A DNA stretch of 64,000 nucleotides. Origin: Selaginella moellendorffii (taxonomy: Eukaryota; Plantae; Lycopodiophyta). Both the position numbers and the translations under genes were made by a program. Under the pieces are notes generated by a model. It was not told the origin of the DNA. It made no database searches and was given only the letters and a program-made list of their open reading frames with translations. Below, one piece after another: positions 25,675 through 58,659 of this stretch (position 1 is the stretch's first letter; each line of letters starts with the position of its first letter). Location: positions 165,765-229,764 of the forward strand of contig NW_003314352.1 in assembly GCF_000143415.4 (NCBI RefSeq). The letters are read 5' to 3'.

Positions 25675-28175
25675 TGTAAAGAACCAGCTCCCCAAGGTGT
25701 CGTAGGCTAAAGGATCTCCGAAAGCACGACTGAAATGATAAAGAGTTTATCGAATTGGACCAAATCTAAGATCGAGTCCAAGATCGACTCTGAGACTGAG
25801 TTCAAAATAGAGTCCGGGATCGAGTCCAAGTCCGGCTCCAAGACCAAATTCAAGATTGAGTCCAAGATTTGAGATTGGGTCTGAGACCAAGTCTGAGGTC
25901 GAGTTTGAGGTCAAGTTTGAGATCGGGTCCGAGATTGGGTCCGAGGTCAAGTTTGAAATCGAGTCCGAGGTTGGGTCCGAGATCAAGTTTGAGATTGAGT
26001 CCGAGACCGAGTTCAAGTACTAATACAAGTCGAGGGGTGAAAGCCCAAAGCGTATGTCTCCCAAAGGCAGGGGGGGGGGGGGGGGGGGGCGGGGGGGGCG
26101 GCGTTGTAGGGGATAGTGAGTCCAAGAACCAGTCTTGAAGGAATTCTCTAGTAGTGCTTCCAAACTGACTTGAGGTTGAGATTGGTGAGACTAGGGCCGA
26201 AGGGCCGAAGGGCCTTGGGTGGGAGTGAGCATGGACTTGGGTGGTGCTGGAAGGGCCACCTCAGGAAGTGCTCAAGAACAGCTCCCACTCCCAAAAGGGA
26301 AACCAACTGCAGTGCTCCTAGCTCATGTGGAGTGGTGCACCACTTGAGTACCATGCAGCTCATTAGTCCTCGCCCTGCCTAGGGGCTTAAACCTTCCCTT
26401 TGGGATGGAAGTGGGGGAGTAGGGGTACCCATACCGGGTTGTTAAGCCATAGTGTTTCCCCCTTGCGTCTCGGAGGAAGTGTTGCACAAAAGGCTTGGGA
26501 TTTAGAGGGTCCCATGATCAAATCTTACAGTGCCAAGGGATGTTAAGAATCTGGAGGCTTTGTGTGCTTGGCTATTTGTGCTTGCAGGGAGTGTAGTTGA
26601 ACCTTAAGTCTAGTTTAACCTAGAGAGGGGGATTGGGAGAGATTTGGGAATCCGTGGATGGATGGTTAACGCTTTGTTACTCATGCAGTGAGTAGTTGAA
26701 ACCAAGTAGGATCTAATACCATAGGCGGGAACCTTGGTGTGGGAACTTAGCTAAGTCCAAGGAAGTGTCAGTCGGATAGATGAGGTAAACTTGCAAATTG
26801 GAAAGGAAAAATTTGTAGCATATAATTTGGTATCAAAGCCTTTTCCTCAATTCTAGCAAAGGATAAAGGCTGATTGCTGGGGGATGGCAAAGGCAAGGCA
26901 TAAACGAATCAAGGCGGACACAAAACCTCCTCCGGAGTTGGAGCTTCTAGTCGAACAAAAGGCTATGGATGAGGAATCTTTGCATGAGGAAAACTCTAGT
27001 GAGGAAATTTCCAAATAGAAGTCTGGTGGTGAGGTTCGGACGTCCAAGGCTCGATTGGACGTTCTAGAAGGAAATTGGCATAGACCAATGCCCTACTAGA
27101 GACTCTTGTACGCAAGTTAAAGCGTGACAAGAAGCGAAAGAAAAAACAAAGGATTGTAGATGCTGACAACGCAGAAGGTGCAGACCTTTTGGCAGGGACT
27201 AAGGCAGAACCAAACAAGTGTAAGCGACTACCACTTGGAGGAGTCTCACTCACAACCTCTATAAGTCCTATTTCAGACTTAGGCTTGCTAGCCCTGAGAA
27301 TGGCATCCCCACCACTCAACCCTTGCACTTGGTCCAAGTGCTCCACATGTCCGATCCCATGACCGACACCACAAGGTACCATCGACATATCAGCCCGTTA
27401 TGCTAAGGCCATGCCCATTCACCTTGGTCACACCAGTGGTCCGACACCACCTCCATCACAGTCCCATCTCTCAAGACTGGGCCATCTGTTCATGAGTGAT
27501 CATCCCAGATCCACTCCTTAGCATCCTTAGGACGCCCGCAGACATGGGGAATAGCCTTCCCCATTATCTCCATTCCGGTCTCCACCAAGTCCCTTTTTGT
27601 CCTTGGCCATGTTTGCCAACACTGCCACTAGATCAAGGCCTACAGGCCCGACCACTAAGTCCCACTGTCCTCTAGGACTTCCTCACTATGTGACTATGTC
27701 CTTGGTCACCACACCAGAGGGCTACTCCTCTTCCTTTCCATAGACTGGGACTTTGAGATAACATTTCGAAACACCGTGGCCCTATGCAAGCCTCATGGGT
27801 ACTCTCCCTGCCTTCTGCCTTTAGGTGCTCTAGCCATAGGCTTAGAGCAAGGTTCCGTTGAGCCACGCTAGGTATCCAAGTAGGTAGTGCCACCCACACT
27901 TAGACTGAGAGCATTGGCCAATCAATCTCCCGGGGGAACTAGAGCTAGCTCTTGAACACTTCACCAAGCTACCCCGCTTGTCAGTCCGTGTTCACTTTAG
28001 TCTTGGACTTCTCAGTGGGCAACTCATCACCCAACACTAGGTACAGCCTTCCTGGGCCAAACTGGCCTTTCCTGCCCAAACTGGCTCCACTGCAGTCCTC
28101 CCCCTTACTATACTTTTGGAGCTCACCAAACCCCCCAGGGTCTGGGAGATGAACGCTTTGGGCTTTCACCCTCTC

Positions 28176-28737
28176 AGACTCGAACTCGGACTCGAACTCG
28201 GACTCGGACTCGGACTCGGACTCGGACTCGGACTCAGACTCAGACTCGGGCTTGGGCTCGGGCTTGGGCTCGGGCTCGGTCTCGGTCCTGGCCTCAGTCC
28301 CGGTCTCGGTCTTGGTCTCGGTCTCGGTCCCGGTCTCGGTCCTAGTCTCGGTCTCGACCTCGGACTCCATCTCAGATCCTTCTCGGACTCCATCTCAGAC
28401 TCCATTTTGGTCCATCTTGGACTCCATCTCGGACTCCATCTCGATCTATCTCGAACTCCATCTCGGACTCCGTCTTAGTCCATCTCGGACTCCACCTCGC
28501 ACTCCATCTCGGACTCCATCTCGGACTCCACCTTGAACTCCATTTCGGACTCCATCTCGGACTCCACCTCGGACTCCACCTTGGACTCCATCTCGGACTC
28601 CATCTTGGACTCCACCTCGGACTCCATCTCGGACTCCGTCTTGGTCCATCTCGGACTCCATCTCGGACTCCGTCTCGGTCCATCTCGGACTCCATCTCGA
28701 ACTCCAACTCTGGTCCATCTCGGACTCCATCTCGGAC
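28176..28737. repeat. 6-bp (GGACTC/GGTCTC) and 12-bp (GGACTCCATCTC) minisatellite in the B LTR; also at about 39328-39978, with related arrays in the A LTRs
   Basis: Direct tandem units; source of the spurious ES/SP/RTPS ORFs. Confidence 0.9.
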
Positions 28738-31255
28738 ACTTCCACGTGTCATGTGTTGGTCCTTCTGGGTCCCTTTTTGGAGCCTCGCTTATTGCTCGCT
28801 TCGTGCTTGTTCCTCGAGCACTTTGTTGGGAGTTCCACTCCTGCTCTCGACCTTTCAAGTCAGAGCTTTTAGTCCAAAAGTGTTACGCTTGTTTGGCTTT
28901 CGCTTCGGCCACTACCACGTGGCACCCTTTCGGCTCCACTTTGGGGCCTAGAGATTTTGTGTCTCACAACTCCACCACCCATAGACGAAGTTCGATGTAC
29001 TCATTGAACGGTAAACCCTTTTATAAAGTAATACCCGCAGGTATTACCATTTCCATCTTTGGCACCCAGCTAATATTTGCCTATGGTTTAACCCCGAAGG
29101 CTCACCATGCCTTGTCTATCCTCTAAGGAGCATAGTCTCTCCAACATAGAGACTCACTCGACCACCTAGGGTGGTTTGCTCCTTTTTATTGGTTCAGTTC
29201 TCGGTAAACCTATTAGAGACACCCTCTATAACTCAATTCCACTACTCATTCTTGAGTAATCTCAGATTCCATTGATATAACCTCTGCACTTTGGAACTTT
29301 TAATTTTGACTTCTCCGAGTCAATTTCCTAGGTGTCTCTGACACCTTATGTTGCACATGGTGCAACTCCACTTCCCTATCCTAGGAAGTTCTTTACTTGA
29401 GGGTACCATCATCCTCTCTTCGATATTGTGCCACCTTTGGGCACTAAGTTCCAGTTATCATAATTGGTGCTAGGGCTGCCTATGGCCCTATTATTTGGCT
29501 ACCTTACCGCTCCCCCCTTTGGAGCATCCACTTTCACCAAATCGGAGCAGTTGGGAATCTATCCTTGGGGAAACATTACCTTTCCCACAATCCATTAGCA
29601 CCCGTTCTTGGCCTAACTTTGCCATTTGGATTCTTTCCCATGATTCCCATGGCTCTTTTCTTAACCACTAGTCTTTTGCTCCTATCCTTGATTGTTGCAC
29701 CTAGCAACATAAGATTGCTACCACCATTTTTGAGGTTTCCTTTCGGTTCCATAGCAAACACTTTGCTTTGCCAAGTCCAGAAGGTGTTCACCCCTAGTAC
29801 GTCTCTTTAACATTTTCTATCGTGGGCTCTATCATGGCCCAACTTTTTGAGACCCTCCCTTGGATCTCTTATAGAGACTACTTTCCTTGGACTTAAGATG
29901 CCATAGCATTGACATAGCTCATTTCCCTTAGGTGTTCTTCCCACTTGGTCACCTTGACCAAGCCACACTTTTATTAATAGTTCAAATCAACACTTTGAAC
30001 TAGGAATCATATTCCTTAAACCAAACAAAGACTTTGTCCTTGTTTAGCCATAAGATCACCTTGTAATCTCATCTTGACCCCTTAATAGGTCTATCAATAA
30101 GAACTAAGTCTTCCAGACCCTTCTAAGTTGTTGACTATAACCCCGAGGGCATCCCCCACACTTGGCGGTGCGCCCAAGCCAGCCCTTTCGGCCAAGGATC
30201 CATAGCAACTGAGACTTGGGTGTCCCTATCTCATTCACCACGTCCTTGGCTTTGCACCAAAGTGTTCAAGTTAGATATGCCAAGCTTTCACTCTAAGCAA
30301 TCTAACCGTGCATCACAACTTCGAGGCATCCCTCGCTTGGCAGTGTGCCCAAACCAGTCTCCTCACTGAGAGTCCATGACCACCGAAATATGAGTGTCCT
30401 CATATTCCAAACCATCACCACGCCTTAGTGATTTGAGACTTGAACCCAAGTACTAGAGGGTTGGGACTCGAACCCAACCTCTGTATATGCATCTACAGAC
30501 AGCATCACTCTAGATGCCTGGCGTGACTCCCCACGCTAGTGCACCAACTTATACTTAAAGCGCGCTATAGATCACAGCTTAGGAACCTAGTTCCTCCACA
30601 TTGCCAAGTCCTTTCACTTGACACGTCTGTGATCATGCATGGACTCCTTCACGCTTGGCCCCATGGCCCCCCTTTATGAAGTTATCACCTCCAACTAGGG
30701 TATTTGTTCCCCTGACTTGCCAATCTCGCTTGGCAAATCCTCCGACCACCGTAACATGGTTCCTCCATAAGCGTGAAAGTCCTTGACCATCGACTTTCGT
30801 TCAAAGCCCTCTCTTTGAACACTCGGGAACTACTTCCCTAACCTTGATAGCCTTGCCTCCTGGCAAGCTTCAAGACTACGCTTCTGTTGCGCCACTCTAG
30901 TTTCGCGTGTTCCATGAACCATTTACACTTTGGCCTTTCTAGGTACTAAACTACCTAGAATCGTCTTTGGGAACCTTGAAGGGACTCTATCCTTTAGTTT
31001 GCCTAGGCCTCCTTTTTCGCAAGCTTTCTAGTTGCCATATAGTCTAACATGGACAACTCCATATTTTAGACTTTCCATAGCATCAAGGTTGCTAGCAACA
31101 ACATCCTCGAGCCCCCATTTGATTCTCCACTCCCAGCTGGCATAACCAACCTTGGTCATGCCCTTCGATTCCTATGGTTCGGTTCTATCCCCTTACTACT
31201 TGCTTTTGGCTTCACACCTTTCCTTCGGTCATTCTCCTCCAGACTAGGAGGATAG

Positions 31256-34200
31256 TGTCAGGAATCCCTGAATCCTCCAATTCTTGCCACATTCCTGACT
31301 CTCGCCGGATTCCTAACCTGCAGACCACATTCCTGATTCTCGAGACACTTCCCTATTCCTGACTCTCGAGACAGTTCCCTATTCCTGACTCCCAAGACAC
31401 TTCCCTATTCTTGACTCTCTGATTTCCTGGACAATTCCTGAGTCTCAAGCCACATTCCTGATATTGATGTGGCGCCTCCTCAACCTCAACTATATTTAGG
31501 CCGTCCTCGATCCAAGAGTGGTGGAGTTTCATCAACCTATAGTATATATAGGTTAGCCTTGTTCCATTTCTCCACAATCTGAATCAACACTAGTCTAAGG
31601 CCTTTTCTTTGTTTCCATTAGCTTTTCTCTTTGTCTTTTGCATTTTCCAGTCTTGATCATGTTGGGGGTCTTGACAGTTTGATTCAGATTGTGCTTTTTC
31701 ATTCTTTTTTTCCTTTAGCTCATTTTGATTGTTTGACTGCCTTTGCCTTTTTTCCCCCTTTTCTTTCTTTCTGCCGATATGGTCTCCAAGCCATCCTGAT
31801 TTCTTTGCCGAAGTCCTTGCAAAAATCCAGTCTGAGAATACCGAGCTGAAGGCGACCCTTCTTCGCATGCAGCAGGAGCTTGCTTCACTTTCGGCTCAAG
31901 GATCCAGCAAAGTTCCTGAACCAAAGGTGAGTTTCCCGGCGAAATTTTTAGGCAAGCGTTCGGAGCTTCGCGGATTTTTGAACCAAATGGAGCTGATCTT
32001 TGCACTTCAACATCGGCGGTATCCCACTCCCGAGTCTCAAATTGGCTCGATTGGGACGTTGCTCGAAGGTGCAGCTTTGTCATGGTTTTTTGCTCTTCTG
32101 GAGAAGAGCATGAAAGGGGTCGTGGTTTCGGAGCTGATGGATCTTCAGTTGTTCAAAGAAAAGCTCGAAGCATGTTTTGGCGAGACGGATCGGGTTCGGG
32201 CTGCTACCACAAAGATGAGACATCTCTCTCAGGGGTCTCGTCCTGCCTCGATCTACGCTGCAGAGTTCCAACTCCTTGCCTTGGACACTCAGTGGGATGA
32301 GCGGGCCCTGATTGACCAATTTCGTTTCGGCCTCAACAACGGTGTCAAGGATTTGTTGCTCACCATGGAGGATCCCAAGGACCTATTGGACGCGATCAAC
32401 AAAGCTATTCGATGTGACAATCGTCTCTTTGAACGTCGCCAGGAAAGTCGCCGCACCGCTGTTTTTCCATCCCAGACTCAGGAATCTCAGCTTGAGTCTT
32501 TGGGGCATACTCCTGAACCTACTGCTCCGGTCTTGATGGATATTTCTGGTACTCCTTGACTCATTAGAGGGAAGTTGAGTCCTGCTGAGAAGCAACGTCG
32601 AATATCTCATAATCTTTGCCTCTATTGTGCTGATCCTAATCACAAAGCAGCTGTGCGTCCCAAGAAGCCTCCCCAACTGCTCGAGTTCACTTTGCCTCAA
32701 AGTCCACCTCTGTTGCAGTCGGGAAACAACCCTGTCCAAACAGAGTAGGAGCTGTCTGTTTGGACTCCCCGAATAAAAATCACTTTTCTTCTTTATCAAG
32801 CTCCTCACCACCTTTCATCAAAGCCACCACCAATTCCCGCAACTTCCGCATCCCATGTCTCCTTTCTTTCACCGGACAATCAGGACTCAAGGCTTTGGCG
32901 CTACGTAACTCGGGTGCAACTTCCTGCTTCATGGACATGGACTTTGCTGCCCGACATCATGTTCCTCTTTCTCCTACCATACGGGATCTGAGGGTTGAAG
33001 GCATCGGCGGGCATTTTGTGTCTCCATCTTCTGGACTTAGGGAAACGTTGCCCGTTCGAGTACACATCAGGTCCACTGTCACCAATATCGCCTTCAACAT
33101 CATCAACAGCAAGTCCTCCTCTATGGTGCTCGGTCTTCCTTGGTTCCAACTACATCAGCCTCAGATTTGTTGGAAGGAATTACAGCTCATCTCTCCCACA
33201 TCACCATCTCCCACGGCTTCCCCTGCTGTTCATCGAGTCCAAATCAGGAAAAGTTCCCTAAACTTAAATCGGGGTTTTGTTCCTGACTCTACGAAGTTTT
33301 CACCCTTTTCTTTTTCCTCTCTTCCATCTTACATTGGACAGTATCCTCGTCTCATCATTCCATTTAGTTGTACACCTCCTTCTATCTCCCCTCCTATCTC
33401 CACAATCACTATGAAAGAACTCCTTCATGAAGAACCTATTTTCCTTTTTGCTTTGCATGTTTTTCCTGTCAGTCTTCCTGAGAAGTATCATGATTTTGGG
33501 GATGTGTTTGACAAGAAAAAAGCTAGTGTACTGCCTGTTCATTGGCCTTATGACTGTCCCATTGATTTACAGGAAGGAGCGTCACCTCCGTGGGGGCCTA
33601 TCTACGGGTTATCCCCGTCCGAGCTTAAGGCCCTCAAAGAGTATGTGGATGAGAACCTTGCCTCGGGGTACATTCAACATTCGCAGTCCCCGGCTAGAGC
33701 GCCTGTCATCTTTGTCAAGAAGAAGGATGGGAGTTTGCGGCTAGTCATTGATTACTGAGGTTTGAACAAGGTGACTGTTCGGAACCGTTATCCACTGCCC
33801 CTGATCTCGGACCTGTTGGAACGCCTCGGCAGTGCCCGCTTCTTCACCAAGATTGACCTCTGTGGCGCATACAACCTGATCCGAATCCGGCTTAGTGATG
33901 AATGGAAGACTGCGTTCCGAACCCGCTATGGCCACTTTGAGTACACTGTCATGCCATTTGGCTTGACAAATGCTCCAGCAGTTTTCCAACACATGATGAA
34001 CGATGTCTTTTGGGAGTTTCTTGATCAGATGGTGATCGTCTACCTCGATGACATCCTCATCTACTCAAAAACTCAGGAGGAGCACGACGAACATGTACAC
34101 AAGGTGCTAGCGAAGCTGCGCGAACACGGCCTATACGCGAAGCTTGAGAAATGTTCCTTCGATCAGCAGTCTGTGGAGTTCCTTGGATACATTGTCACTC

Positions 34201-36584
34201 CTGAGGGTATCATGATGGATCCTGCCAAGGTCAAGACTATTCTCGAGTGGGAGCCTCCACAATCAATGTCGGACGTTCAGGTTTTCCTTGGCTTCACCAA
34301 CTTCTACCGCAAATTTATTGATCACTACTCTGACATTGTCCTTCCTCTCACGCATCTCACTCGCAAGGATGTTCCCTTCTCTTGGTCTGCTTCTGCCTAG
34401 CATGCCTTTGACACAATCAAGGTAGCCTTCAGTTCTGCTCCCGTTTTAATCCATGCTGATTCCTCACAACCTTTCTTCATCGAGGCTGATGCCTCCGACT
34501 TGCCATTGGTGTTGTGCTGTCTCAACTCGGAGTGGATCAAGAACTTCATCCGGTCGCTTTCCATTCTCGGAAATTCCAGCCTGCGGAGATCAATTACGAA
34601 ATCCACGACAAGGAGCTCCTTGCCATCGTGGATTCCTTTGGAGAGTGGTGCCGTTTCTTGGAGGGGGCGGGCCATCAAACAGCAGTCTGGACGGATCACA
34701 AAAATCTCAAGTACTTTGCCACTTCCCGAGTTTTAAGCCGTCATCAAGCAAGGTGGGCACAATTCCTGAGTCGGTTTGACTTTGTTATCAAGTACAGACC
34801 TGGAAAGCTTCAAGGCCTTAATGATGCTCTTTCAAGGCGCTCCTATCTTAGTCTCAGGCCTGGTAATCCTGCCTTCGATCAACAGAATCAAGTTATCCTC
34901 AGTCCTGATTGGCTTCAAGTTATGGCAATTTCCTTGGCCCCGCAGGACTCCTCCTTGATGGATGCAATTAGAAATGATCTTCAATCCGATGATCTCGCCA
35001 GCGACATTTTCCCCCATCTTCAGGCTGGACACCCTGTGACTCCCGACTGCCGGCGATTTGACGAGTTTGAGTTCTTAGATGGCTTATTATACCGTGTGGA
35101 GCAGCTTTACGTTCCTGAAGGTGATGCTCGAAGGTTGGTCCTGATGGCGTGCCACGATAGCCCGACTGCTGGTCACTTCGGCATTGCGAAAACCTATGAG
35201 CTAGTTGCATGGGACTTTTGGTGGCTTCACATGGACAACTACATCAAAGCTTTTGTTACCTCCTGTAACACTTACGCCCGGAATAAGATACCTCGCCACC
35301 TTCCTTCAGGTTTGCTTCGTTCCCTTCCGGTCCCTTCAGGTCCTTGGGAATCCATCTCCATGGATTTCTTGAGTGATCTTCCGAGTTCTGGAGGCTTCAA
35401 CAGCATTTTAGTCGTGGTGGATCGCTTCACAAAGATGGTGCACTTCTTGCCATGTACCAAGGAGTTTTCGGGCGAGGACATGGCAAAACTGGTATTCAGG
35501 GAAATTTTCTGACTTCATGGGATTCCTACGGATGTGGTTTCGGATTGGGGGCCTCAGTTCATCTCTCATTTCTGGAAACGATTTTTGCAGCTGCTTGGAG
35601 TGAAGGCCAACCTCTCTTCGGCGTATCATCCTCAAACTGATGGGCAGTCCGAGCGAACGATTCAGACGTTAGAACAATTCTTGAGGTGCTTCATCAACTA
35701 TCATCAGGATAACTGGTTCGATATCCTTCCCCTTGCTGAGTTCTCCTATAACAACTCTGTTCACTCCTCTCTTCGAATTTCCCCCTTCTTTGCAAACTCT
35801 GGCCGAAATCCCCGATTCAATCTCTCACTTCCTTCTCCATCCGAATCCTCTCATTCAAATCCCCGCTCTAATGCATTTGTCTCCAACCTCCAGGAAATCC
35901 ACAACTCCATCTCCTTCCACCTCCATCGAGCTCAGGAATCTCACAAAACATTTGCCAATGTCCATCGTCAGGATTGTCCCCCTTACAATATCGGGGATAA
36001 AGTCTGGCTCCTCAGGCGAAATATCTCCACCACCAAGCCCTGTCCAAAACTTGATTTCAAACGCCTTGGTCCTTTCCCTATCACTGCCATTATTAATCCT
36101 GTCACTTATCGCTCGTCGTTCTCATTCACATCTTTGTTCCACTTGTTCTTGAGGAGGGGGTGCTGTCAGGAATCCCCGAATCCTCCAATTCTTGCCACAT
36201 TCCTGACTCTGGCCGGATTCCTAACCTGCAGACCACATTCCTGATTCTCGAGACACTTCCCTATTCCTGACTCTCGAGACACTTCCCTATTCCTAACTCT
36301 CAAGACACTTCCCTATTCCTGACTCTCTGATTTCCTGGACAATTCCTGAGTCTCAAGCCACATTCCTGATATTGATGTGGCGCCTCCTCAACCTCAACTA
36401 TATTTAGGCCGTCCTCGATCCAAGAGTGGTGGAGCTTCATCAACCTATAGTATATATAGGTTAGCCTTGTTCCATTTCTCCACAATCTGAATCAACACCA
36501 ATCTAAGGCCTCTTCTTTTTTTCCATTAGCTTTTCTCTTTGTTTTTTGCATTTTCCAGTCTTGATCATGTTGGCGGTCTTGACA
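31256..36584 (+). mobile_element. Element C: Tcn1-like Ty3/Gypsy element. LTRs 31256-31676 and 36164-36584; gag plus disrupted pol; chromodomain deleted
   Basis: TSD GATAG (31251-31255, 36585-36589). Gag with Zn-knuckle relic; PR, RT (YLDD), RH and IN motifs with premature stops; PPT GAGGAGGGGGTGC. Confidence 0.93.
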
Positions 36585-39500
36585 GATAGCTTTGCACTTT
36601 CTATCATGCCTTAGCAAGTATTCTTAGGGATGAACCTACCTGATAGCCTAGGGAGTGGTTCCTCAATCCAGGTATGCTCACTTTATAATCCCACACACCG
36701 GGATTAACGTTGCTGCTCATGGGCCTTCACTAGCTTTGCCAAAATTCCATTTTTGGCTTTGTCCAATTCAGGTAGACAATCTTCTCCTGTCTCTGCAACC
36801 TTGGACATTTGGATAGCACCTTCTATCCATCATTCGCTAGGGACTTAGTCCCTTGGGCCTTATCTATTGCCCTCGCGACACTAACCACCACCTCCTGGTG
36901 TTCCAGAGTGTTTGGGTGTCCCAATGATGGTCTTCTTGACAATGAGCATTTTCTTTTACGATATTGACTCACTATATCGTAAGATAAGCAATTTATCCCC
37001 TGTAAGGGTATATCTAACTTCCTTATGCCATTAAGAAGTCTTGGGTAGCTACCTTCTACCCGTTTAACCAATTATCTTTGCACCTCTTGCTTAGTTGCCC
37101 CATAGTTGTCAAGTCCTACAACTCATTGCTTGGTGCTTCCATACCTCCATCATTATCTGGGTCACCACACTCCAACCGCATGCCTTCCAGCTTAGGCTAT
37201 GCCATTCTCGCTTCCGTTAGGATTCCCTTGGTAAGGGGTTTTTATGAACCCACCATCATAACCTCAAGGTCTCACACCTTGGCACATTTGGTGTCTCCAC
37301 ACCATCGGCCTCACGAGCCTACCCTTATGACACTACTTATTAGTGTCTAGGTCTTTGCCAAGACTAATATAATTGTTCCTTATGCTAACTATTTGTTAGC
37401 ACCGCACCATAGTGTTTGCACCCAACTCTGGGCCAAAGTTACTTTCTTCTAGGAACATCTTTCCCACAACTTTAGTATGGCACATTCTGTCATTAATGAG
37501 ATACCTACTATTCTCATACTTGGATCTTATGATCCTCCCCATACCTCATGGGGCACTATACACCTCAGTCCAAATGCTTCAACCAATCCCTTAGGACCAT
37601 TCCCTGACTCCACTTGAGTCATCTAGCATTTTGAACTTTGCTAATCCAACAACCTGCGAGGTCTCAGTCTTAGAGGTGCCAACTCACTAGAATACAACTT
37701 CTTGTATTCATGTCCTACTCACAAGGATAATTTTTGCAAGTGTTACTCTGACACTTGATGATTTTCTTGGGGCTAACCTTTGCCCCTTAGGACTACTTGT
37801 TCATATGATGAGAATAACAACTCATCTTTAAGTACACCCCCAACTCCTTGGGGTTTTCCAGCATTTATTAGAGGTAGCCCCGACTACCATTTCAAGGACT
37901 AGTGTCCTCTTTTATATTTGACCTCCCACGGTCAACAATTCCAGTCTTGAATTTATGAGTACCAACCTCAACCATATAAGGGTAATCTTGTGACTCCTAT
38001 ATTGTTTTGGAGTCTGTATCTTTCCCATAGTTGTTTACCACAACTACATTAGCTCATTTGCTGCGTCAAACACTCATCTAGATCACATCCTTAACTCTCT
38101 AAGGACACCCTTATACTGTTCCCAAGATCCCAAAGTCGTTCCCTTACTGGCCCTTTTCTATCCACCATATCGTGCACAAGTTCACGCATGAACTTGAGTG
38201 GAGAGCCATGTCTTCTCGGCATGTTACTCCTCAAGGATAGGTCCATATCGAGGACCTCCAATTCCAATACAAGTGGTGATATACTTAGCCACTAATAAGA
38301 GTCGGACTAAAGAATAGCTCTGATACCAAATTGTAAGCAACTAATTTTTCCATTCTACTTTAGTCACTTAACCACACCTCCGACCACTTGGAGGAGTCTC
38401 ACTCACAACCTCCATAAGTCCTATTTCAAACTTGGGCTTGCTAGCCCCGAGAATGGCATCCCCACCACTCAACCCTTGCACTTGGTCCAAGTGCTCCACA
38501 TGTCCGATCCCATGACCGACACCACAAGGTACCACTGACATATCAACCCGTTACGCTAAGGCCATGCCCATTCACCTTGGTCACACCGGTGGTCCGACAC
38601 CACCTCCATCACAATCCCATCTCTCAAGACTGGGCCATCTGTTCATGAGTGATCATCCCAGATCCACTCCTTAGCATCCTTAGGATGCCTGCAGACATGG
38701 GGAATAGCCTTCCCCATTATCTCCATTCCGGTCTCCACCAAGTCCCTTTTTGTCCTTGGCCATGTTTGCCAACACTGCCACTAGATCAAGGCCCACAGGC
38801 CCGACCACTAAGTCCCACTGTCCTCTAGGACTTCCTCACTGTGTGACTATGTCCTTGGTTACCACACCAGAGGGCTACTCCTCTTCCTTTCCATAGACTG
38901 GGACTTTGAGATAACATTTCGGAACACTGTGGCCCTACGCAAGCCTCATGGGTACTCTCCCTGCCTTCTGCCTTTAGGTGCTCTAGCCATAGGCTTAGAG
39001 CAAGGTTCCGTTGAGCCACGCTAGGTATCCAAGTAGGTATTGCCACCCACACTTAGACTGGGAGCATCGGCCAGTCGATCTCCCGGGGGAACTAGAGCCA
39101 GCTCTTGAACACTTCACCAAGCTACCCCGCTTGTCAGTCCGTGTTCACTCTAGTCTTGGACTTCCCAGTGGGCAGCTCATCACCCAACACTAGGTACAGC
39201 CTTCCTGGGCCAAACTGGCCTTTCCTGCCCAAACTGGCTCCACTGCAGTCCTCCCCTTACTATACTTTTGGAGCTCACCAAACCCCCCAGGGTCTGGGAG
39301 ATGAACGCTTTAGGCTTTCACCCTCTCAGACTCGAACTCGGACTCGGACTCGGACTCGGACTCGGACTCGGACTCGGACTCGGGCTTGGGCTCGGTCTCG
39401 GCCTTGGCCTTGATCTCGGTCTCGGCCATGGCCTCAATCTCGGTCTTGGCCTCAATCTCGGTCTCGGTCCCGGTCTCGGTCCCGGTCCCAGTCCTGGTCT

Positions 39501-42500
39501 CGGTCTTGACCTCGGACTCCATCTTGGATCCATCTAGGACTCCATCTTGGACTCCATCTCGATCCATCTTGGACTACATCTCAGACTCCATCTTGATCCA
39601 TCTCGGACTCCATCTCGGACTCCGTCTCGGTCCATCTCGGACTCCATCTCGGATCCTTCTCGGACTCCATCTCGGACCCCGTTTTGGTCCATCTTGGACT
39701 CCATCTCGGAATCCGTCTCGGTCCGTCTCGGACTCCATCTCAAACTCTGTCTCGGTCCATCTCGGACTCCATCTTGGACTCCGTCTCGGTCCATCTCGGA
39801 CTCCAGCTCAGACTCCACCTCTAACTCCATCTCAAACTCCATCTCGGACTCCATCTTGGACTCCACCTCAGACTCCATCTTGGACTCCACCTCAGACTCC
39901 ATCTCGGACTCCGTCTCGGTCCATCTCGGACTCCATCTCGAACTCCAACTCAAGTCCATCTCGGACTCCATCTCGGACACTTCCATGTGTCATGTGTTGG
40001 TCCTTTTGGGTCCCTTTTTGGAGCCTCGCTTATTGCTTGCTTCGTGCTTGTTCCTCAAGCACTTTGTTGGGAGTTCCACTCCCGCTCTCGACCTTTCAAG
40101 TCGGATCTTTTAGTCCAAACGTGTTACACTCGTTTGGCTTTTTTTTCGGCCACTACCACGTGGCACCCTTCCAGCTCCACTTTGGGGCCTAGGGATTTTG
40201 TGTCTCACAACAAGGTCGAACAGATTGAAGTGGAATCAATCCCTTAAGTAGTTCCTAAGTACAAACTAAAGCCCCCATCAGTCTTCAAGGGAGTGAATGA
40301 CTATAAGGTGATGGAGGATTAGTTACGATATGGAGGACTACTTCTGAGTATTGTGGTTACTGAGCTCGGAGAAGGTCCCATGTGCAAAACCATACTTGGC
40401 AGATAAAGCAAAGTCTTGGTGGAGAACGATAGAGGTTAATGAATGACCGGTGGCCACTTGGGAAATGATGAAGGTGAGGATCTGCATGACTTACATTCCT
40501 CCAAATGCTACTCTGCACCTAAGGGATGAGCTAAGTAGGTTGAAACAGACCAAAACTATTCAAGAGTATATGAATGGGTTTATGGCAAAGAGGATATTTG
40601 TCACAGATATGGGTGATATAGATGAGTTCCATGCCTTTATATTAGGCTTGCAAATTTGGGCTTGCGGAGAGGTGATACATTGGAACCCAACCAACTACAA
40701 GGAAGCGTTGGATGCGGCTATCAAGGTGTATTTCAATGATAACTTGTGAAAGGGGAACATGACAGGGTCGGGGTCCATGTTTAGCAAATGGGCTAAACTA
40801 AGGGGAATATATGGCAAAGGGAAGAGTGATAAAAAGACGGGAATGGAAAAAGTACCTTTAGTGATCCAGCGGCTGTTGGACCAATTCATGCTGAAGGAGC
40901 TACCGGTGGGGTTGCCCCCCGCACGACTGATAGAACATAAGATTGAGTTGGTTGAGGGTGCTAATATGGTGGTTCATCCACTCTATCGTTTGAATGAAAA
41001 GGAACTCAAGGAGCTCAAGTGCTAACTAGAAGAGTTGGTGGACAAAAGGTATGTTAAGTTAAGCAAGTTACCGTATGGGGCACTAGTGTTATTTGTGAAA
41101 AAGAAAGATGGATTTATGCACATGTACAGAGACTAACGGTTGCTCAACAAGTATATAAAGAAGAACAAGTACCGTTTGCCAAGAATTGAGGATCTGTTCG
41201 ATAGGTTAGGAAAGGCAAAATACTTCTCGAGGATTGACCTAAGATCAGGATAGTACCAAATCAGGGTAGCAAAGGAAGATGTCGAGAAGACAACCTGTCA
41301 AACAAGGTATGGGAGCTTTGAGTTTCTGGTGATGCCCTTTAGGCTATGCAATGCACCGGCAACGTTTTTGGCGTTCATGAACCACATCTTTATACCCTAT
41401 CTAGATCACTTTGTGGTTGTCTATATTAACGACATCTTGATCTATAGTAAAATGCTAGAGGAGTATGCTGAACACTTGACAAAGGTGTTTGAAAAACTAA
41501 GGGAACACAAGTTATATGCTAAAGAGAGTAAATGTGACTTTTCTCAATAAAAGGTAAAGTTTTTCGGGCATGTGGTGGGTAAGGACGGGCTCAAAGTGGA
41601 CCCTGAGAAGGTCTAAGTGATCTAGGAATGGGAGTGACCATCGAATGTACATGAGTTGAGGGCGTTCTTAGGGCTATGCAACTACTACAGAAAGTTTATC
41701 AAATATAATCCGAGAGTAGCCTTGGCTTTAACAAACCAAATAGGTAAAGGGAAAGTGGTATGGATAGCGAAATGTGAGGTGGCATTTATCCACCTCAAAG
41801 GGAAGTTGAGGAAGACTCCCGTGTTGGCGTTACCAGACTTTGGTAAGAACTTTGAGGTAGAAATGGATACTTCAGACTTTGTGTTAGGCACAGTTTTGAA
41901 GCAAGATAGTTATCTAGTGGTGTCTTCTCGAAGAAGTTGGACAAGGCTCAACAAAAGTGGCATGCCCACGAGAAGGAATTATTTGCGGTGGTCAAGGTGC
42001 TCAAGGAGTGGCAACACTACTTTGGGAGGCTCTTCAAAGCTTATACGGATAATGTGGCAACAAAACACTTTTTGTCACAGCCCAACTTAAGAGGGAAACA
42101 AGGTCAGTAAGCCAATGCTTTAGCCGAGTTTAATTGCGAGATTCTGTATAAACCTGGGAAGAGCAACATCGTAGCGGATGCTCTAAGTTGAAAAGCAAGC
42201 TTGAAGTTGGTGATATCTAGGGCAACAACAATATTTTAGGATGATGTACAGACACTATATGAGGATGATGGTCTAGCACAAGAAGTGTTGCTGAAGAACC
42301 AAGAGGCGCAAGAAGCTCACTAGAGAGGTGAGCTGCTAATGGAAGAGAAAATAGGTTATGTGGAACATAATGGACTCATGTATTATAAACAAACAAAAGT
42401 GTATGTTTTAGAAGGGGAATTAAGGAAGGTAGCCTTAGAAGAGTGTCATGACGGACCTCTTGCGGGACATGGCAGAGTGTTTAAGACGATGGGCTTACTC

Positions 42501-45500
42501 AAGAGGAAGTATCACTTGCCAGATATGGCTAAGGACGTCCAAAACTATTTAAAGACATGTCTAACATATTAGTAGGTCAAAGGCGTGGGTAAGGTTAATG
42601 GGGGCTTGTTACAAAGCATCCTAATTCTAGATCATCCGTGGAAATATCTTATGATAGACTTCATTATGGGACTCCCCCCAAGTGAGGGGTTTGATGTGAT
42701 ATTCGTGGTGGTGGACCAATTTTCAAAGATGGCACATTTTATACCCACCACAACAGAAGTGTATGCAAAAGGTGTGGCGAAGCTATTCTTCGAACAAGTG
42801 GTTCAAGTGTGGGGAAGCTAGAAGAGATTCTCTCAGATCGAGATAAGATCTTCACTAGTAGGTTCTAGAGAACTCTCCTAGAATAGTATTGCACTATGTT
42901 GAACTTCAGCACAACTTATCACCCACAGACAAGTATAGAGTATTAAGTCAAGTTTGATGGAACTAACACTTCTTGACAGATGGACATACAGAAAGGGTAA
43001 ATAGGCAGCTAGAGGATTATTTGTGATGCTATATCTTGGGAAACCATACTGATTGGGTAAGTGATTTGGGACTTGCGGAAATGTGCTATAACAACTCACC
43101 ACATTCGAGTATTGGGGTGAGTTCATGGGAAGTCATTAATAGGCGAGTTATTGAAGGTCTTATAGAACTCAACGTGGCCAAGTCTCATGGAGAATTACCC
43201 ACAATGGAGGCATTCACGGTAAAAAGACTCAACATTTGGAATCTAGTGAGGGATTCCTTGGAACAAGCTCAACAAAGGCAAACCAAGTATGCGAACCAAA
43301 AGTGCTGGGATGTAGAGTTCCAACTTGGGGAGAAGGTATGGCTGAACACCAAAAACCTAATGCTACCAAGTGGGATCAACCGAAAGTTGACCCAAAGGTA
43401 AAAATGCATATATTCCTAGAAATGAACTAATCTTGAATTCCTTAAGTAGGTTCATGGGGTGTTACGAGATTAATGCACGAATCGGTAAAGTAGCTTACTG
43501 CCTCCGACTTCCTCGAGAGATGGGGAAGATGCACCTAGTGTTCCATGTGAACTTACTCAAGCCATATTTTGAGGATCTGCTTCACAAAGACCAAGTGAGA
43601 CCTTTACCTAAAGTTATCCAAGGCGAAGAGGAATACGAAGTCGAGGGCATCTTCAATGAGTGAAAGAGCAAGTGAGGACACGAGGTGAGGGAGTTCCATA
43701 TGAAGTGGAAAGGATTTCCATACTACAAAGCAACATGGAAACTGGAGGAGAACCTAGCAAACATGCAAGATCTAGTGGAGGAATTTCTACAAGACAGAAA
43801 TCTATGTACTTATGCAAAGTTCAATTCAAAGTATCAATTTGTGAAGTTGAGCAATGGCATATGTTGGGACCTGAAAGCACGCTGAAGGTAACTTAATTAG
43901 CATGGGTTAGCTAGGTCAATTAGGCATAGGGAACTACACTCGACTTCCCGCGGGGATGTCAAATCCATAGACATATTCTACGAAGGTTGGGTTCAAGTCC
44001 CAACCCCATACTAGGGCGTGGTGAGGTGAGGGGTAGAGGTATATTTCGTTGTTATGGGGTCCTGGCCAGGGAGGCTAATTTAGGCACACTACTAAGTGGG
44101 GGATGCCCCCAGAGACATGGTCAACAAGTCGTAGGATTAAAAACAAATGTTTAATATGGGCATTGAACTTCTTCTATGGGTGGTGGAGTTGTAAGGAACT
44201 AACTCCTCGAGGTGTCATAAGCTAAAGGATCCCCGAAAGCATGACCGAAATGATAAAGAGTTCATTGAATGGGACTGAGTCTGAGATCGAGTCTAAGACC
44301 AACTCTGAGACCGAGTTTGAGATAGAGTCCGGGATTGAGTCCGAGGCCGACTCTGAGACCGAGTTTGAGACCGAGTTTAAGACAGAGTCCAAGATCCGAG
44401 ATTGGGTCGGAGACCTAGTCAAGTCTGAGGCCGAGTCCCAGGTCGGGTCTGAGATCGAGTCTGAGATCGAATCCGAATACTAATACAAGTCGAGGGGTGA
44501 AAGCCCAAAGTGTGTGTCTCCCAGGGGGGGGGGGGGGGGGGGGGGGGTTCCCGGGGTTTTTAAAATTTTTTAAGGGTAGTAAGGGTTTGGAACCCCCCTT
44601 GGAAAAATTTTCCCAAGGGGGTTCCCAACCAAATTTAGGTTTAAACTGGGGCCCAAAAGCCTTTGGGGGGAAGGAACATGGACTTTGGGGGGGTTGGAGG
44701 GCCCCCCCCCGGGAGGGAAAAAAACTGGGGGGCTCCCCCCCCCTGGGAAGGGGGGCCCCCCTTGGGGACCATGGGGGTTATTGGACCCTGCCCCACCCAG
44801 GGGGTTAGGCCTTTTCTTTTGGAAGGAAAGGGGAAAATAAGGGGACCCCTACCGGGGTTTTAGGCCCCGGGGTTTCCCCCCCCCCTTTCCAAAAAAGGGT
44901 TTCCCCCCAGGGTTGGGATTTTAAGGGGCCCCTGAACAAATTTTTGGGGACCCCGGGTGTTTGGAATTTAAAAACCTGGGGGGCTTGGCCGCTTTGGCTT
45001 TTGGGGGGGNNNNNNNNNNNNNNNNNNNNNNNNNNNNNNNNNNNNNNNNNNNNNNNNNNNNNNNNNNNNNNNNNNNNNNNNNNNNNNNNNNNNNNNNNNN
45101 NNNNNNNNNATAGAGAATCTATCTCTCTCTATCTGGAATAGTCATACCCAAAACTGTGAGTTAGAGCCCTAGACACCTTTCTAATATGTCCACGGAATGC
45201 TCTTATCAACAAACATGTACAACTTGGCTTTATCTTGATCATCATTATGAGGTGGCATCCTTCAATATTTTCTAAGATGGTCTCCATATGCACATAGGGT
45301 CATGAGCATCATGTCAAGAATGAAAGGTAGCAATCATTGTAAAGTGATTGAACTAATGATACACATCATCTTTAGGATTCTTAGTTTATATACAAAAGTA
45401 AATGGTCTGAATTGAAACTAATCTAATAACGGCTATCAAAATCCTACTATACTAATATTTATTGCAGTGGAAAATAATGAGTCATGTGAGGAGTGAGAGT

Positions 45501-45721
45501 CCTTGACTCCAGCTGAATAAAAGGATTAGTAGTAAGAGAAAGAGGAGTTGTACCATATGCTATGAATACCACTATTAATTGAGTTTGATTATTCAACTAT
45601 ATCTATATAGCATTAAGCAATTACACCAATTGCTTCTCTAGAGTCAAAGGAGGAAGAGGTTGTTACTTTACCATGAAGATGAACATAGGATAAAGGGTGA
45701 AAACCACATGTACTATAGTTA

Positions 45722-46000
45722 AACATCCTTGGGTTTGAATAATACTAAAGTGGATGACCTCCTAAGAAGTCTAAATTCACGAGTTTACATTTGGTATCAA
45801 AGAGGACTCAGGTTCAACTTTTTTAGTTGGCTAAGGGAATCATATCACATGTTGAAATTGAGTTCAGTTTACCATAAATAAAAGTGCTCCCCCTTTTTAT
45901 AATTGGTTAAGGGTATTGGGATATTTAGGGTTACATGTCCTTGGGTTTGAATAGTATTGGGATAGGTGATATCTCAGAAAGTCTAAATTTATGAGCTTAT
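45722..46000 (+). mobile_element. Degenerate copy of TRIM family F
   Basis: LTR 3' end, then TTTGGTATCAAAGAGG PBS, then a second partial LTR. Similar to the reverse complement of 57715-57959. Confidence 0.7.
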
Positions 46001-47486
46001 ACCTAGATTAATATGACAAAAAACTATCAAGAGGTGGGCTTTTAAAGAAGGACTTGAAGTCATGTGCCCCTCAGATTTGGGATGGAGTGAATATATTGTG
46101 AGTCACCATAGATCTCCAGACAACAAATGAAAAGAAGGAAGCAATGAAGGAGATATTGGAGACCTGGCAATTACTCATCTCCACCAGTTTTGGAGATGGC
46201 TCTAGGGGACCTCAATGGCAATTATGATAATATTATAGAGTAATACATGGCAATTATGGTCTATTGCACACTTTTCTTGGAGTTGCAGTTGGTCAAGAAT
46301 GCCTTGTGAGTAGGTTTCCAACACTTGATGAGGATGGAAGCACATTACTATCTTTAGAAAAGTGGAGTACTTTTCAGAGCATTGTCAAGCATTGGCATCG
46401 ACTCTTTGCTATAGGTATTCACAATATGAGTTATAATCTGAACAAAGGATATAGTGGCAATTTTACACTTCAGAGGCCTTTTAGAGGATTTGCAACAGTG
46501 GTTTGTAGAGATTGTGTAAGGTATGGCTTTAACAGTTTATGAACCTTGTTTGTCTAATCCACTTTTTGTCCACTTTACAGAATTTGATGAAGAATGACAA
46601 TCCAAGTTACATAATTTTACAATAGATTCACTAGGGTTCTGGCCTAAGGAGATCACTCACATCTAAAGAGATGACTTATTTCATCTCATATAGTAATATG
46701 TAACATTGAGTTTCGAAGCAATCAAATGAATATAGTTCTAAAAGTATGAAATTATCAAGCATAGAAGAGTTTTAAATATATTAAATATTTTCTATATTCT
46801 TCCAAATGCCTTTGGTGGGCATCTTGTAATTGCCATCACTTACCATCTGTGCTTAATGATATATTGATAAATTTCTTCAAAAGATAGTCTATTACTTGTT
46901 TGAAATCATCGCTCTCCAAACAAATAGCCTCTTGAAGCTCAATAAGTATGGCATTACTCTACTCAAGCCCCTTAAACTCCTCAAGCACCTTGATATTATC
47001 CTTAGCTATGACATATGATTGGATGGTTTGTTTTTCTCCTACGTTTTGTATGCATTGGTTGATACTATCGACCTGGGCCTACTTTCTAAGGTTGAAAGAA
47101 TCTAGGATTCAAATAATAAGAATATCTGATCATCAAAGGTTCCATATAAAATATCTACTGGTAGTTCTTCATCTTTAACTTTGACTATGAGCTTAGGCTT
47201 AGTTTTTGCACACCAGGTGAACCAATGGGTGAAATAGGGGAGGGATTGGGAGTAGTTAACACCTTCAGGCATGATCCTTCACTAAGAAAAATCTGGGCTT
47301 TGTAGGTTGAGAAGAAACCTCTCTATTAAGCAAATCTTGGAGGAAACCCTTCCATCTGTTAGAAAAGAAAAAGGAATATATGTTGTGTTTATTATAAGAT
47401 TATATGACTTACAAGAGTTACAATTGTCTTCCAATCTCAATAAATTCCTATCCTCCTTCCTTTGCCCATAGCATATAGTGGAAACC

Positions 47487-53159: not shown

Positions 53160-56100
53160 TGTCAAGACCCCCAACAAGATCAAGACTGGAAAATGCTAAA
53201 GACAAAGAGAAAAAGCTAGTGAAAACAAAGAAGAGGCCTTAGACTGGTGTTGATTCAGATTGTGGAGAAATGGAACAAGGCTAACCTATATATACTATAG
53301 GTTGATGAAGCTCCACCACTCTTGGATCGAGGACAGCCTAAATACAGCTGAGGTCGAGGAGGCGCCACATCATCATCAGGAATGTGGCTCGAGACTCAGG
53401 AATCGGGAAGTGTCTCGAGAGTCAAGAATAGGGAAGTGTCTCGAGAGTCAGGAATAGAGAAGTGTCTCGAGAGTCAGGAATGTGGTCTGTAGGTCAGGAA
53501 TCCGGCGAGAGTCAGAAATGTGGCAAGAATTGGGGGATTCCTGACAGCACCCCCTCCTCAAGAACGAGTGGAACGAGGATGTGAACGAGAACGAAGAGGA
53601 GGATGAGATGAGCGGCGAGGGATGGGAGATGGAGAAAAAGAATGAGGACTGGGACGAGAAGGATAGCGGCGGTGGAAGTCCTGAACAAGGTCAGGAGAAT
53701 GAATCAGGTTGTCCGCAGGTTCCCAAGTGCGTTCCTCAGGTCCGTAACCCTTCCAGTCCACCAGATAGTAGAGTTTAGATCGTGAAATCTTGGAATCAAG
53801 GATGTCCTGAACCTCGTACTCAGACCCATCCTCGAGCTGCACTGGTGGAGGCGGAGGAATGACCCGATTTGGAATAGGACTGGGAATATAAGGCTCAAGG
53901 AGAGAGGAGTGAAAAACGGGGTGAATTTGATATGAGGAGGGAAGTGCAAGGCGATAAGTGACAGGATTAATGATGGCAGTGATAGGGAAAGGACCAAGGC
54001 GTTTGAAATCGAGTTTTGGACAGGGCCTGGTGGTGGAGATATTTCGCCTGAGGAGCCAGACTTTATCCCCGATATTGTAAGGGGGACAATTCTGACACTG
54101 GACATTGGCAAATGTTTTATGAGATTCCTGAGCACGATGGAGGTGGAAGGAGATGGAGTTGTGGATTTCCTGAAGGTTGGAGATAAATGATTCAGAGCGG
54201 GGATTTGAACGAGAGGATTCAGATGGAGAAGGAAGTGAGAGATTGAATTGGGGATTTCGGCCAGAGTTCGCAAAGAAGGGGGAAACTCGAAGAGAGGAGT
54301 GAACAGAGTTGTTATAGGAGAACTCAGCAAGGGGAAGGATATCGAACCAGTTATCCTGATGATAGTTGATGAAGCACCTCAAGAATTGTTCCAACGTCTG
54401 AATCGTTCGCTCGGACTGCCCATCAGTTTGAGGATGATATGCCGAAGAGAGGTTGGCCTTCACTCCAAGCAACTGCAAAAACCGTTGCCAGAAATGAGAG
54501 ATGAACTGAGGCCCCCGATCCGAAACCACATCTGTAGGAATCCCATGAAGTCGGAAAATTTCCCTGAATACCAGTTTTGCCATGTCCTCGCCCGAAAACT
54601 CCTTGGTACATGGCAAGAAGTGCGCCATCTTTGTGAAGCGATCCACCACGACTAAAATGCTGTTGAAGCCTCCAGAACTCGGAAGATCACTCAAGAAATC
54701 CATGGAGATGGATTCCCAAGGACCTGAAGGGACCGGAAGGGAACGAAGCAAACCTGAAGGAAGGTGGCGAGGTACCTTATTCCGGGCACAAGTGTCACAG
54801 GAGGTAACAAAAGCTTTGATGTAGTCGTCCATGTGAGGCCACCAAAAGTCCCGTGCAACTAGCTCATAGGTTTTCGCAATGCCGAAGTGACCAGCAGTCG
54901 GGCTATCGTGGCACGCCATCAGGATCAACCTTCGAGCATCACCTTCAGGAACGTAAAGCTGCTCCCCACGGTACAATAAGCCATCTAAGAACTCGAACTC
55001 GTCAAATTGCCGGCAGTCGGGAGTCACTGGGTGTCCAGCCTGAAGATGGGGAAAAATGTCACTGGCGAGATCATCGGATTGAAGATCATTTCTGATTGCA
55101 TCCATCAAGGAGGAGTCCTGAGGGGCCAGGGAAATTGCCATAACTTGAAGCCGATCAGGACCGAGGATAACTTGATCCTGTTGATCGAAGGCAGGATTAC
55201 CAGGCCTGAGACTGAGATAGGAGCGCCTTGAAAGAGCATCAGGAAGGCCTTGAAACTTTCCAGGTCTGTACTTGATAACAAAGTCAAACCAACTCAGGAA
55301 TTGTGCCCACCTTGCTTGACGACGGCTTAAAACTCGGGAAGTGGCAAAGTACTCGAGATTTTTGTGATCCGTCCAGACTGTTGTTTGATGGCTCGCCCCC
55401 TCCAAGAAACGGCGCCACTCTCCAAAGGAATCCACGATGGCAAGAAGCTCCTTGTCGTGGATTTCGTAATTGATCTCCGCAGGCTGGAATTTCCGAGAAT
55501 GGAAAGCGACCGGATGAAGTTCGTGATCCGCTCCGAGTTGAGATAGCACAGCACCAATGGCAAAGTCGGAGGCGTCAGCCTCGATGAAGAAAGGTTGTGA
55601 GGAATCAGCATGGATCAAGACAGGAGCAGAACTGAAGGCCGCCTTGAGTGTGTCGAAAGCCTGCTGGGCAGCAGCAGACCAAGAGAAGGGAACATCCTTG
55701 CGAGTGAGATGTGTGAGAGGAAGGACAATGTCAGAGTAGTGATCAATGAATTTGCGGTAGAAGTTGGCGAAGCCAAGGAAAACCTGAACGTCTGACATTG
55801 ATTGTGGAGGCTCCCATTCGAGAATAGTCTTGACTTTTGCAGGATCCATCGTGATACCCTCAGGAGTGACAATGTACCCAAGGAACTCCACAGACTGCTG
55901 ATCAAAGGAACATTTCTCAAGCTTCGCGTATAGGCCGTGTTCTCGCAGCTTCGCTAGCACCTTGCGAACATGTTCGTCATGCTCCTCCTGAGTTTTTGAG
56001 TAGATGAGGATGTCATCGAGGTAGACGATCACCATCTGATCAAGAAACTCCCGAAAAACGTCGTTCGCCATGTGTTGGAAAACCGCTGGAGCATTTGTCA

Positions 56101-57709: not shown

Positions 57710-58659
57710 GTGTGATTCCCCTAGCCAACCAATAGAGTCGGATTTGGAACCTCTCTAATACCAAATGTAAGCTCTTGAATTTGGACTTTCTGGGAGGTCA
57801 CCTAGCCCAATACTATTCAAACCTAAGGACGCTTAACCCCAAATATCCCAAAATCCTTAACCGATTGGAAAAGGGGGTGCACTCTTATTCATGGGCCCTT
57901 TCCCTCTATATTTGAACCCCATGGATTATCTCTCAAGTCGTTCTCTTTGGTTACTTACAAACGAGCTTAATGCCTCCTTGATGTATATGGCTGTGGAAGA
58001 TGGACTAAGAGCTTGAGCAAGGCTCCCCAGAAAGGGTGATCACTAGTACAACTCATCCTTGGGACAAGGACTTTGTTAGGGGGCGAAGAATTGTTAGGCA
58101 CCAACTTTGACCACATGGTCAACATTGGTTAAAAGGAGGCTTAAGGGTATTTGAAGGCATGTTAGGGTAAGGTCTAAACCTACCTTAGGGCTCATATGGT
58201 TGGGTGGTGAGGAACCTCAAGAAGTGGTGTAGCATAGTATAATACGACTAGATCTCTATCATTTTACACTGGATCATAACAATAGTGGAAGATAAAATTA
58301 GGGTTGTTCATTTGTTATGATTGTTTTAATCTTGAGATTTCTTATTGGTGTGTTAATGGCATAATTAATATCTCTAGTTTTGCATTATTATGCTTTAATG
58401 TGCATAGTCGTGAATTTAAGTAAGTGTTATTGTTGAAAATGTGTTGTTGATTAGGGTTGGATGTTGCAGAAAGCTGGAGGGGGCACTGGAGATCTTTGAG
58501 GCCTTGCTAGCTTGAGACAATAACTTGGAACATCATGATCCAAGATCATTCTTCCTAGTAGGCTGTAATGGGATTCTTAGAAAATGCAGCAAGAAATGGC
58601 ATTGATCGGCCCAAGTAACTCTTCTCACCGTGCTTGAGTCAGGATCAGTCAGCGTGGAG

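Follow-up and report, generated by a model that had tools for sequence, protein, structure and literature searches.

Two candidate spliceosomal introns in the integrase of a chromovirus of Selaginella moellendorffii

Introduction

The stretch of DNA analysed here, hereafter the window, comprises 64,000 nucleotides (nt) of contig NW_003314352.1 from the lycophyte Selaginella moellendorffii. It contains a long terminal repeat (LTR) retrotransposon, element A, which extends from 25675 to 27218 and again from 40215 to an assembly gap at 45010, the two parts being separated by a nested element. The order of its Pfam domains (Retrotrans_gag, RVT_1, RT_RNaseH_2, Integrase_H2C2, SH3_Tf2-1, Chromo) is that of a Ty3/gypsy chromovirus, and its integrase is split by two short inserts that resemble spliceosomal introns. 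LTR retrotransposons replicate through RNA, and introns in them are expected to disappear. Where a high-copy family retains two introns in the gene of an essential enzyme, the RNA for translation and the RNA for copying must be kept apart. We examined whether the inserts are introns of the family and how they bear on the proposal of an initial annotation, that splicing acts as a switch for integration.

Results

Insert 1 occupies 42933–42979 (47 nt, A/GTATAG...CTAAC...GACAG/AT, phase 1) and insert 2 occupies 43398–43449 (52 nt, AAG/GTAAAA...CTAAT...AAGTAG/GT, phase 2). On rechecking, everything that the initial annotation had said of them in this respect was exact: the coordinates, the GT-AG ends, the CTAAY branch motifs, the lengths that are not multiples of three and the in-frame stops in each. 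Both have the features of U2-type introns, namely a GT 5′ end, an AG 3′ end and a YTRAY motif 10–40 nt before the 3′ splice site; the branch motif lies 13 nt from the 3′ end in insert 1 (CTAAC) and 19 nt from it in insert 2 (CTAAT). Their G+C content is 0.34 and 0.27, respectively, as against 0.42–0.43 in the flanking coding DNA. Such signals are common by themselves, since 47 candidates of the form GT..AG..YTRAY occur in 3.6 kb of element A. The argument thus rests on where the signals fall, namely exactly at the borders of the two segments that homologues lack; the chance of this for both inserts is roughly estimated at about 1e-7.

The reading frame across the integrase passes from frame 3 to frame 2 over insert 1 and returns to frame 3 over insert 2. 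Without splicing, the frame of exon 1 meets a stop four codons into insert 1 (TAA 42944–46), five codons ahead of the Glu of GHTE, which we take, by the PQ(T/S)xGxxE motif, to be the third residue of the DDE triad. Unspliced translation would thus end before the catalytic Glu, as had been proposed. The frame of exon 2 runs into an immediate stop in insert 2 (TAA 43399–401). The site of insert 1 had been read as YHPQT/(D/N)GHTERVN; the split site is exact, but removal at the GT-AG borders gives Asn rather than Asp. In addition, a 4-nt direct repeat, GACA (42928–31 and 42975–78), flanks insert 1, the splice sites being 1 nt off the edges of the insert, and taking the insert as 42932–42978 restores the canonical HPQT-D-G codon. 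The repeat may have been left by an insertion from which insert 1 arose, or may be due to chance. The two inserts show no likeness to each other (235 of 500 shuffles reach an equal score), and neither recurs in the 64-kb window or matches the adjoining exon DNA; there is thus no sign of an introner-type repeat or of a tandem duplication.

To compare the exons with intron-less relatives, the exon pieces were translated and searched separately, with the exons unjoined and the frames unrepaired. An intact chromovirus in the window (53558–57034, minus strand) aligns over both junctions residue for residue. The same colinearity, no residue missing or extra at either junction, is seen with about 20 intron-less chromovirus polyproteins found in an exhaustive protein search. 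For example, residues 844–883 of polyprotein P0020 end at 42931, residues 880–1022 cover 42967–43398 and residues 1020–1131 start at 43442. The SH3_Tf2-1 profile of Pfam has 64 positions, and exon 3 enters it at position 24, meaning that insert 2 cuts a single domain (GPY/F) in two. The frame succession 3/2/3, together with this colinearity, confirms that removing the inserts restores the frame. The further statement that three other elements of the window, labelled C, D and E, are uninterrupted at the HPQTDG site held in part: uninterrupted sites do exist, but only two were found in the window, at 35627 (plus) and 54436 (minus), and they belong to 95% identical copies of one other family.

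That other chromovirus family is represented by copies at 31256–36585 and 53160–57710, which lie on opposite strands and whose internal parts are 95% identical. Their LTRs measure 388–422 nt and are 97–99% alike within a copy, and in the minus-strand copy at 53160–57710 integrase and chromodomain lie uninterrupted in an open frame of 1158 residues.

The searches also bear on where the introns may have come from. One could suppose that the 3′ part of the integrase and the chromodomain, introns included, were taken from an intron-bearing host (domesticated) gene by recombination or template switching, so that the introns would be of host descent. The Galahad-type chromoviruses of S. moellendorffii are indeed discordant in reverse transcriptase, integrase and chromodomain trees (PMC3350952; PMC6317226), as such an exchange might leave them. 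However, a host gene with such exons was not found, the nearest proteins in the databases are ordinary polyproteins of retroelements with at most 41% identity, and insert 1 interrupts the catalytic core itself, ahead of the point at which one would expect a swap of the C-terminal module. We regard host capture as improbable. In the protein libraries searched the family itself is absent: a word-index search with exon 2 as query returned a single candidate and no match, and the best of 461 hits in an exhaustive HMMER search are only 30–41% identical. A metagenome scan gave one relative (32% identical), and an Rfam scan of 36000–47000 gave no match.

The inserts might also have been private to this decayed copy, or an artefact of assembly; the copy carries many private lesions, and assembly gaps lie nearby. 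The Logan contigs of an independent DNA run (X24, same species label) were placed on the window at a likeness of at least 85%. In insert 1, 84 distinct DNA contigs cover position 42961, with a summed depth of 40,794 that equals that of the adjoining exons; in insert 2, 52 distinct contigs cover position 43437. These positions are at least 33 or 46 letters from the contig ends, so the contigs span both edges of each insert. Thus the inserts are not private to the copy in the window, and the first condition under which the initial annotation would have been refuted, insertions unique to this copy, does not hold: both interiors are present in the independent run at family depth, and the published consensus of what appears to be the same family has the same three-part layout of open reading frames (ORFs; PMC3350952). 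Within the limits of these data, a private lesion or artefact is refuted by the DNA contigs and has next to no probability left. The joints expected of intron-less DNA, 42932^42980 and 43397^43450, are absent among the 15 best-supported of 57 DNA joints (depth 13–37). These data support the view that the inserts are fixed in the DNA of the family and so have survived RNA-mediated copying. Differences of the window copy from the RNA reads of run X1 and from the X24 contigs are mostly A>G and T>C (the copy having A or T), as expected if an old, methylated copy has decayed by C-to-T changes.

RNA was sampled from three RNA-seq runs of 2026 (X1–X3), about 12% of each read set being examined. They yielded 8, 3 and 1 matching reads, respectively, and among these 12 reads no joint reached the threshold for listing. 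Nevertheless, one X1 read (first mate on minus) is counted at 42897, 42904, 42987 and 43063, with zero coverage at 42961. Its bin depths of 0.29 and 0.78 of 139 correspond to about 40 + 108 = 148 letters of a 150-nt read. With 148 of 150 letters accounted for, the 47 nt are absent from the read and not replaced by other letters. Since insert-less DNA is at most rare, a spliced transcript is the likelier source. Of the junctions predicted for spliced RNA, one read bears on 42932^42980, in that it omits the interior of insert 1; none is informative at 43397^43450.

The inserts were also compared with introns of host genes. Six host introns, deduced from continuity of frame and domain in a SUN-domain gene, a MurB-like gene and an NPH3-family gene of the window, measure 58, 65, 55, 57, 50 and 61 nt and mostly have GTA-type 5′ ends. 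CTAAC or CTGAT is present 16–19 nt from the 3′ end in three of the six. With 47 and 52 nt, the inserts fit the short end of the host range of 50–65 nt, which bears out the host-like size that had been claimed for them; their G+C content (0.27–0.34) is below that of the six host introns (0.36–0.55). Short introns are a property of the species, as the intron-length distribution of S. moellendorffii clusters with those of fungi and is sharply unlike those of other land plants (PMC6157073).

Element A fits SM1-Galahad of S. moellendorffii, or a very close relative, the match being to the published description and not base by base. SM1-Galahad is described as having hundreds of copies, none intact, with LTRs of more than 1 kb that carry poly-G tracts, a tRNA-Met primer-binding site (PBS) and a group I chromodomain (PMC3350952). 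In that description, an ORF1 of 3885 bp, with core integrase at its end, precedes two short ORFs of 316 and 309 bp, the second of which holds the chromodomain (Novikova and co-workers, 2012; PMC3350952). Element A (Table 1) shares the host, the LTR length, the poly-G tracts, the tRNA-Met-type PBS, the polypurine tract (PPT), the three-ORF layout and the C-terminal chromodomain; from ATG 43081 to the stop at 43401 there are 321 nt, comparable to the ORF of 316 bp. The paper makes no mention of introns and treats the breaks as the lack of an intact copy (PMC3350952). The two inserts explain this layout of three ORFs with no intact copy.

Table 1. Features of element A and of the element nested in it
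Feature	Coordinates	Strand	Remarks
5′ LTR	25675..26820	+	starts TGTAAAGAAC; poly-G 26070-26098; 3′ boundary approximate; 68-72% identical to 44190-44944
PBS-like sequence TGGTATCAAAGC	26828..26839	+	tRNA-Met type, 1 mismatch
gag start	26884..27218	+	ATG 26884; cut off by nested element X
Rest of gag	40215..40746	+	Retrotrans_gag domain 40447-40746; several stops
Reverse transcriptase and RNase H	40850..42107	+	RVT_1, RT_RNaseH_2; stops, frameshift near 41915
Integrase exon 1	42324..42932	+	H2C2 zinc finger, catalytic core to YHPQT; stops 42570-75, 42866, 42887
Candidate intron 1	42933..42979	+	47 nt, phase 1; 84 DNA contigs; skipped by one RNA read
Integrase exon 2	42980..43397	+	catalytic Glu (GHTE), rest of core, first part of SH3; one stop, 43024
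Candidate intron 2	43398..43449	+	52 nt, phase 2; inside SH3 (GPY/F) domain; 52 DNA contigs
Exon 3	43450..43800	+	SH3_Tf2-1 remainder 43451-43567; chromodomain ~43691-43792; stops 43661, 43673
Polypurine tract region CTATGGGTGGTGGAG	44174..44188	+	sequence
3′ LTR	44190..45009	+	starts TGTAAGGAAC; poly-G 44524-44547; ends at assembly gap 45010-45109
Nested LTR element X	27219..40209	-	12,991 bp; splits gag of element A, not part of A
Element X LTRs	27219-28970, 38331-40209	-	1.75-1.88 kb, 88% alike
Element X PBS	38317-38328	-	perfect tRNA-Met
Element X target duplication	27214-18 and 40210-14		perfect 5-bp ACAAG

The copy in the window is dead, a point that the initial annotation had not made. 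It has at least 18 in-frame stops, frameshifts at about 42815 and near 41915, and a 13-kb insertion in gag, and between gag and the reverse transcriptase there is no room for a protease (or a CCHC finger). The frameshift at about 42815 is of 1 nt (VWG/KLEEILSDRD) and lies 39 codons upstream of insert 1; the family contigs cover 42762 and 42830, on either side of it. A programmed −1 ribosomal slip at TGG-GGA-AGC (42810–18) that would bypass it was considered and rejected, there being no canonical slippery heptamer. Stops per codon are 1/139 in exon 2 and 2/117 in exon 3, compared with 10/579 and 3/169 in upstream pol. Exons 2 and 3 are thus no more decayed than upstream pol, which mildly favours the view that the inserts are true introns of the family.

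In comparisons of the copy with the family contigs, larger insertions or deletions (indels) appear as loose ends rather than as indel differences (e.g. at 40887). This loose end was tried as the point at which a protease had been deleted and was discarded, as it reflects only a small local indel variant.

Discussion

The main goal of this analysis was to decide what the two inserts are. On balance, we lean towards the view that they are genuine U2-type introns fixed in the family, that unspliced RNA serves as the template, and that spliced RNA alone encodes a complete integrase with its chromodomain. In such a scheme, the RNA that is reverse transcribed would be the unspliced form, because the introns would otherwise have been lost. 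The unspliced RNA could encode Gag through reverse transcriptase, RNase H and an integrase ending just before the catalytic Glu, and only RNA spliced at both sites would encode the full integrase core, the SH3 domain and the chromodomain. The logic would be that of the two RNA pools, which is already established for Ogre elements, here applied to the integrase.

Several observations weigh against this reading. First, the window copy is itself unable to make any of the proposed proteins, and GT-AG removal of insert 1 yields HPQT-N-GHTE, with Asn where relatives keep a conserved Asp. Second, the RNA sample is thin at 12 reads. For intron 1 it amounts to one read with 18 mismatches to the window copy, which indicates that the read comes from another family member, and for intron 2 none of the 12 reads is informative. 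One or a few intron-less DNA copies, which could be the source of that read, are possible among the 42 weaker DNA joints. Third, the six indel differences between the copy and the family contigs, all of them minor variants, include none at about 42815. If the table of these differences is complete, the frameshift is common to at least 95% of the family DNA compared and may break the integrase despite splicing. We take this sharing as a warning and not as a finding, since an absent table row is weaker than a seen alignment.

These points bring forward the strongest competitor. The family could be integrase-defective and non-autonomous, copied in trans by, for example, SM2-Galahad, in which case the inserts would be lesions of a successful defective master copy, perhaps spliced occasionally, with no working integrase depending on them. 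Not one of the hundreds of SM1-Galahad copies is intact, and the related SM2-Galahad has a single uninterrupted ORF of 4731 bp with integrase and chromodomain (PMC3350952). The very few RNA reads, and a frameshift that apparently makes no difference between the window copy and the family contigs, would also suit a family of this kind. Set against this, two independent inserts that both combine GT..AG ends, a correctly spaced branch motif, host length and low G+C are very unlikely as lesions by the rough estimate given above. Furthermore, the SH3 and chromo domains are still recognisable in exons 2 and 3, whose decay does not exceed that of upstream pol, one RNA read lacks intron 1, and the shared frameshift is deduced from a missing table row rather than a seen alignment. 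We consider copying in trans a possible but rather doubtful account.

The splicing switch put forward in the initial annotation therefore stands in part. Its basis, intron-like inserts that are present in family-wide DNA and a stop ahead of the catalytic Glu, is borne out, whereas the copy from which it was drawn is dead and its frameshift at 42815 is perhaps family-wide.

Part of what is described here is already known, namely the SM1-Galahad family with its odd ORF layout and the existence of intron-bearing LTR elements such as Ogre. Introns in the coding regions of LTR elements are rare, as had been noted, but to call them unprecedented would be too strong: in Ogre elements, pol contains an intron, and a fraction of the transcripts undergo its splicing (PMC6317226; PMC12786077). 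Element A would resemble Ogre in that an LTR element retains a spliceosomal intron in pol through replication and only spliced RNA encodes the whole polyprotein (for Ogre, PMC6317226; PMC12786077). The differences are substantial. Ogre has one intron, with a mean of a few hundred bp, between protease and reverse transcriptase; its elements are giant and are not chromoviruses, and its splicing was shown experimentally. Element A, on the other hand, is a lycophyte chromovirus with two mini-introns (47 and 52 nt) in the integrase core and the SH3 domain, and its splicing is predicted from sequence and one read. In the literature searched, we found no description of two mini-introns inside an integrase.

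Ty1/copia elements (EVADE, BARE, Drosophila copia) and retroviruses offer a second comparison. Their spliced and unspliced pools differ in coding and replicative roles, as is proposed for element A (PMC12786077; PMC3735527). In those systems, pol or gag-pol is spliced out, which increases the output of Gag or Env, and it is the unspliced RNA from which the full-length ORF is translated. In element A, by contrast, it is the full-length integrase that would need splicing.

If the splicing is real, it would explain why SM1-Galahad has no intact copy and would carry the strategy known from Ogre, with its one pol intron, over to the integrase. The family would then be a compact natural system for studying the sorting of spliced and unspliced RNA, the dosage of integrase and the origin of introns in plant retroelements. 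Otherwise, the family exemplifies a highly successful element with a defective integrase that lives on the proteins of a relative.

A more elaborate version, which we put forward tentatively and hold to be rather unlikely in its entirety, is that the family gained two mini-introns in its integrase and kept them through a self-protecting design. Only unspliced RNA could be replicated as a genome, and complete integrase with its chromodomain would come from spliced RNA alone; an intron in the leader would drop the PBS; and intron 1 would be a datable gain from a 43-nt insertion. A candidate leader intron of 72 nt (26785–26856, GAG/GTAAAC...TTCTAG/CA) reaches from the end of the 5′ LTR into the leader; it contains the PBS, and its branch motif is weak. 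Were it to be removed, the PBS would be lost with it and spliced RNA would never be copied back into DNA. The GACA repeat and the splice sites 1 nt off the insert edges would fit an origin of intron 1 in a 43-nt insertion, and hence a datable intron gain in a plant.

Other features of the window

Both LTRs of element A begin TGTAA(A/G)GAAC. Because the 3′ LTR ends in the gap and the LTRs are about 70% alike, the TG..CA end pair and the target duplication of the element itself are hidden. A single insertion event would leave them much more alike than the 68–72% observed (25675–26820 versus 44190–44944); the cause may be recombination between subfamilies, or an assembly that is chimeric near the gap at 45010–45109.

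The possibility that element A is 5′-truncated at 40212 was ruled out by the ACAAG target duplication of element X, the element continuing at 25675–27218. The LTRs of element X are full of 12-nt tandem repeats (39321–39978), and element X carries a further nested element. The flank of its 3′ LTR (28971 onward) and the consensus flank from its family contigs are nearly identical to the PPT region of element A. This near-exact match indicates that element X and SM1-Galahad are relatives that differ in their LTRs; an integrase of the A type was not found within element X.

The host genes lie in a block at 1–22300, which comprises RING-finger, SUN-domain, MurB-like, PPR and NPH3-family genes and a nuclear gene resembling group II intron maturases (19752–22238, minus strand). 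The introns of this block are tiny, at 50–65 nt.

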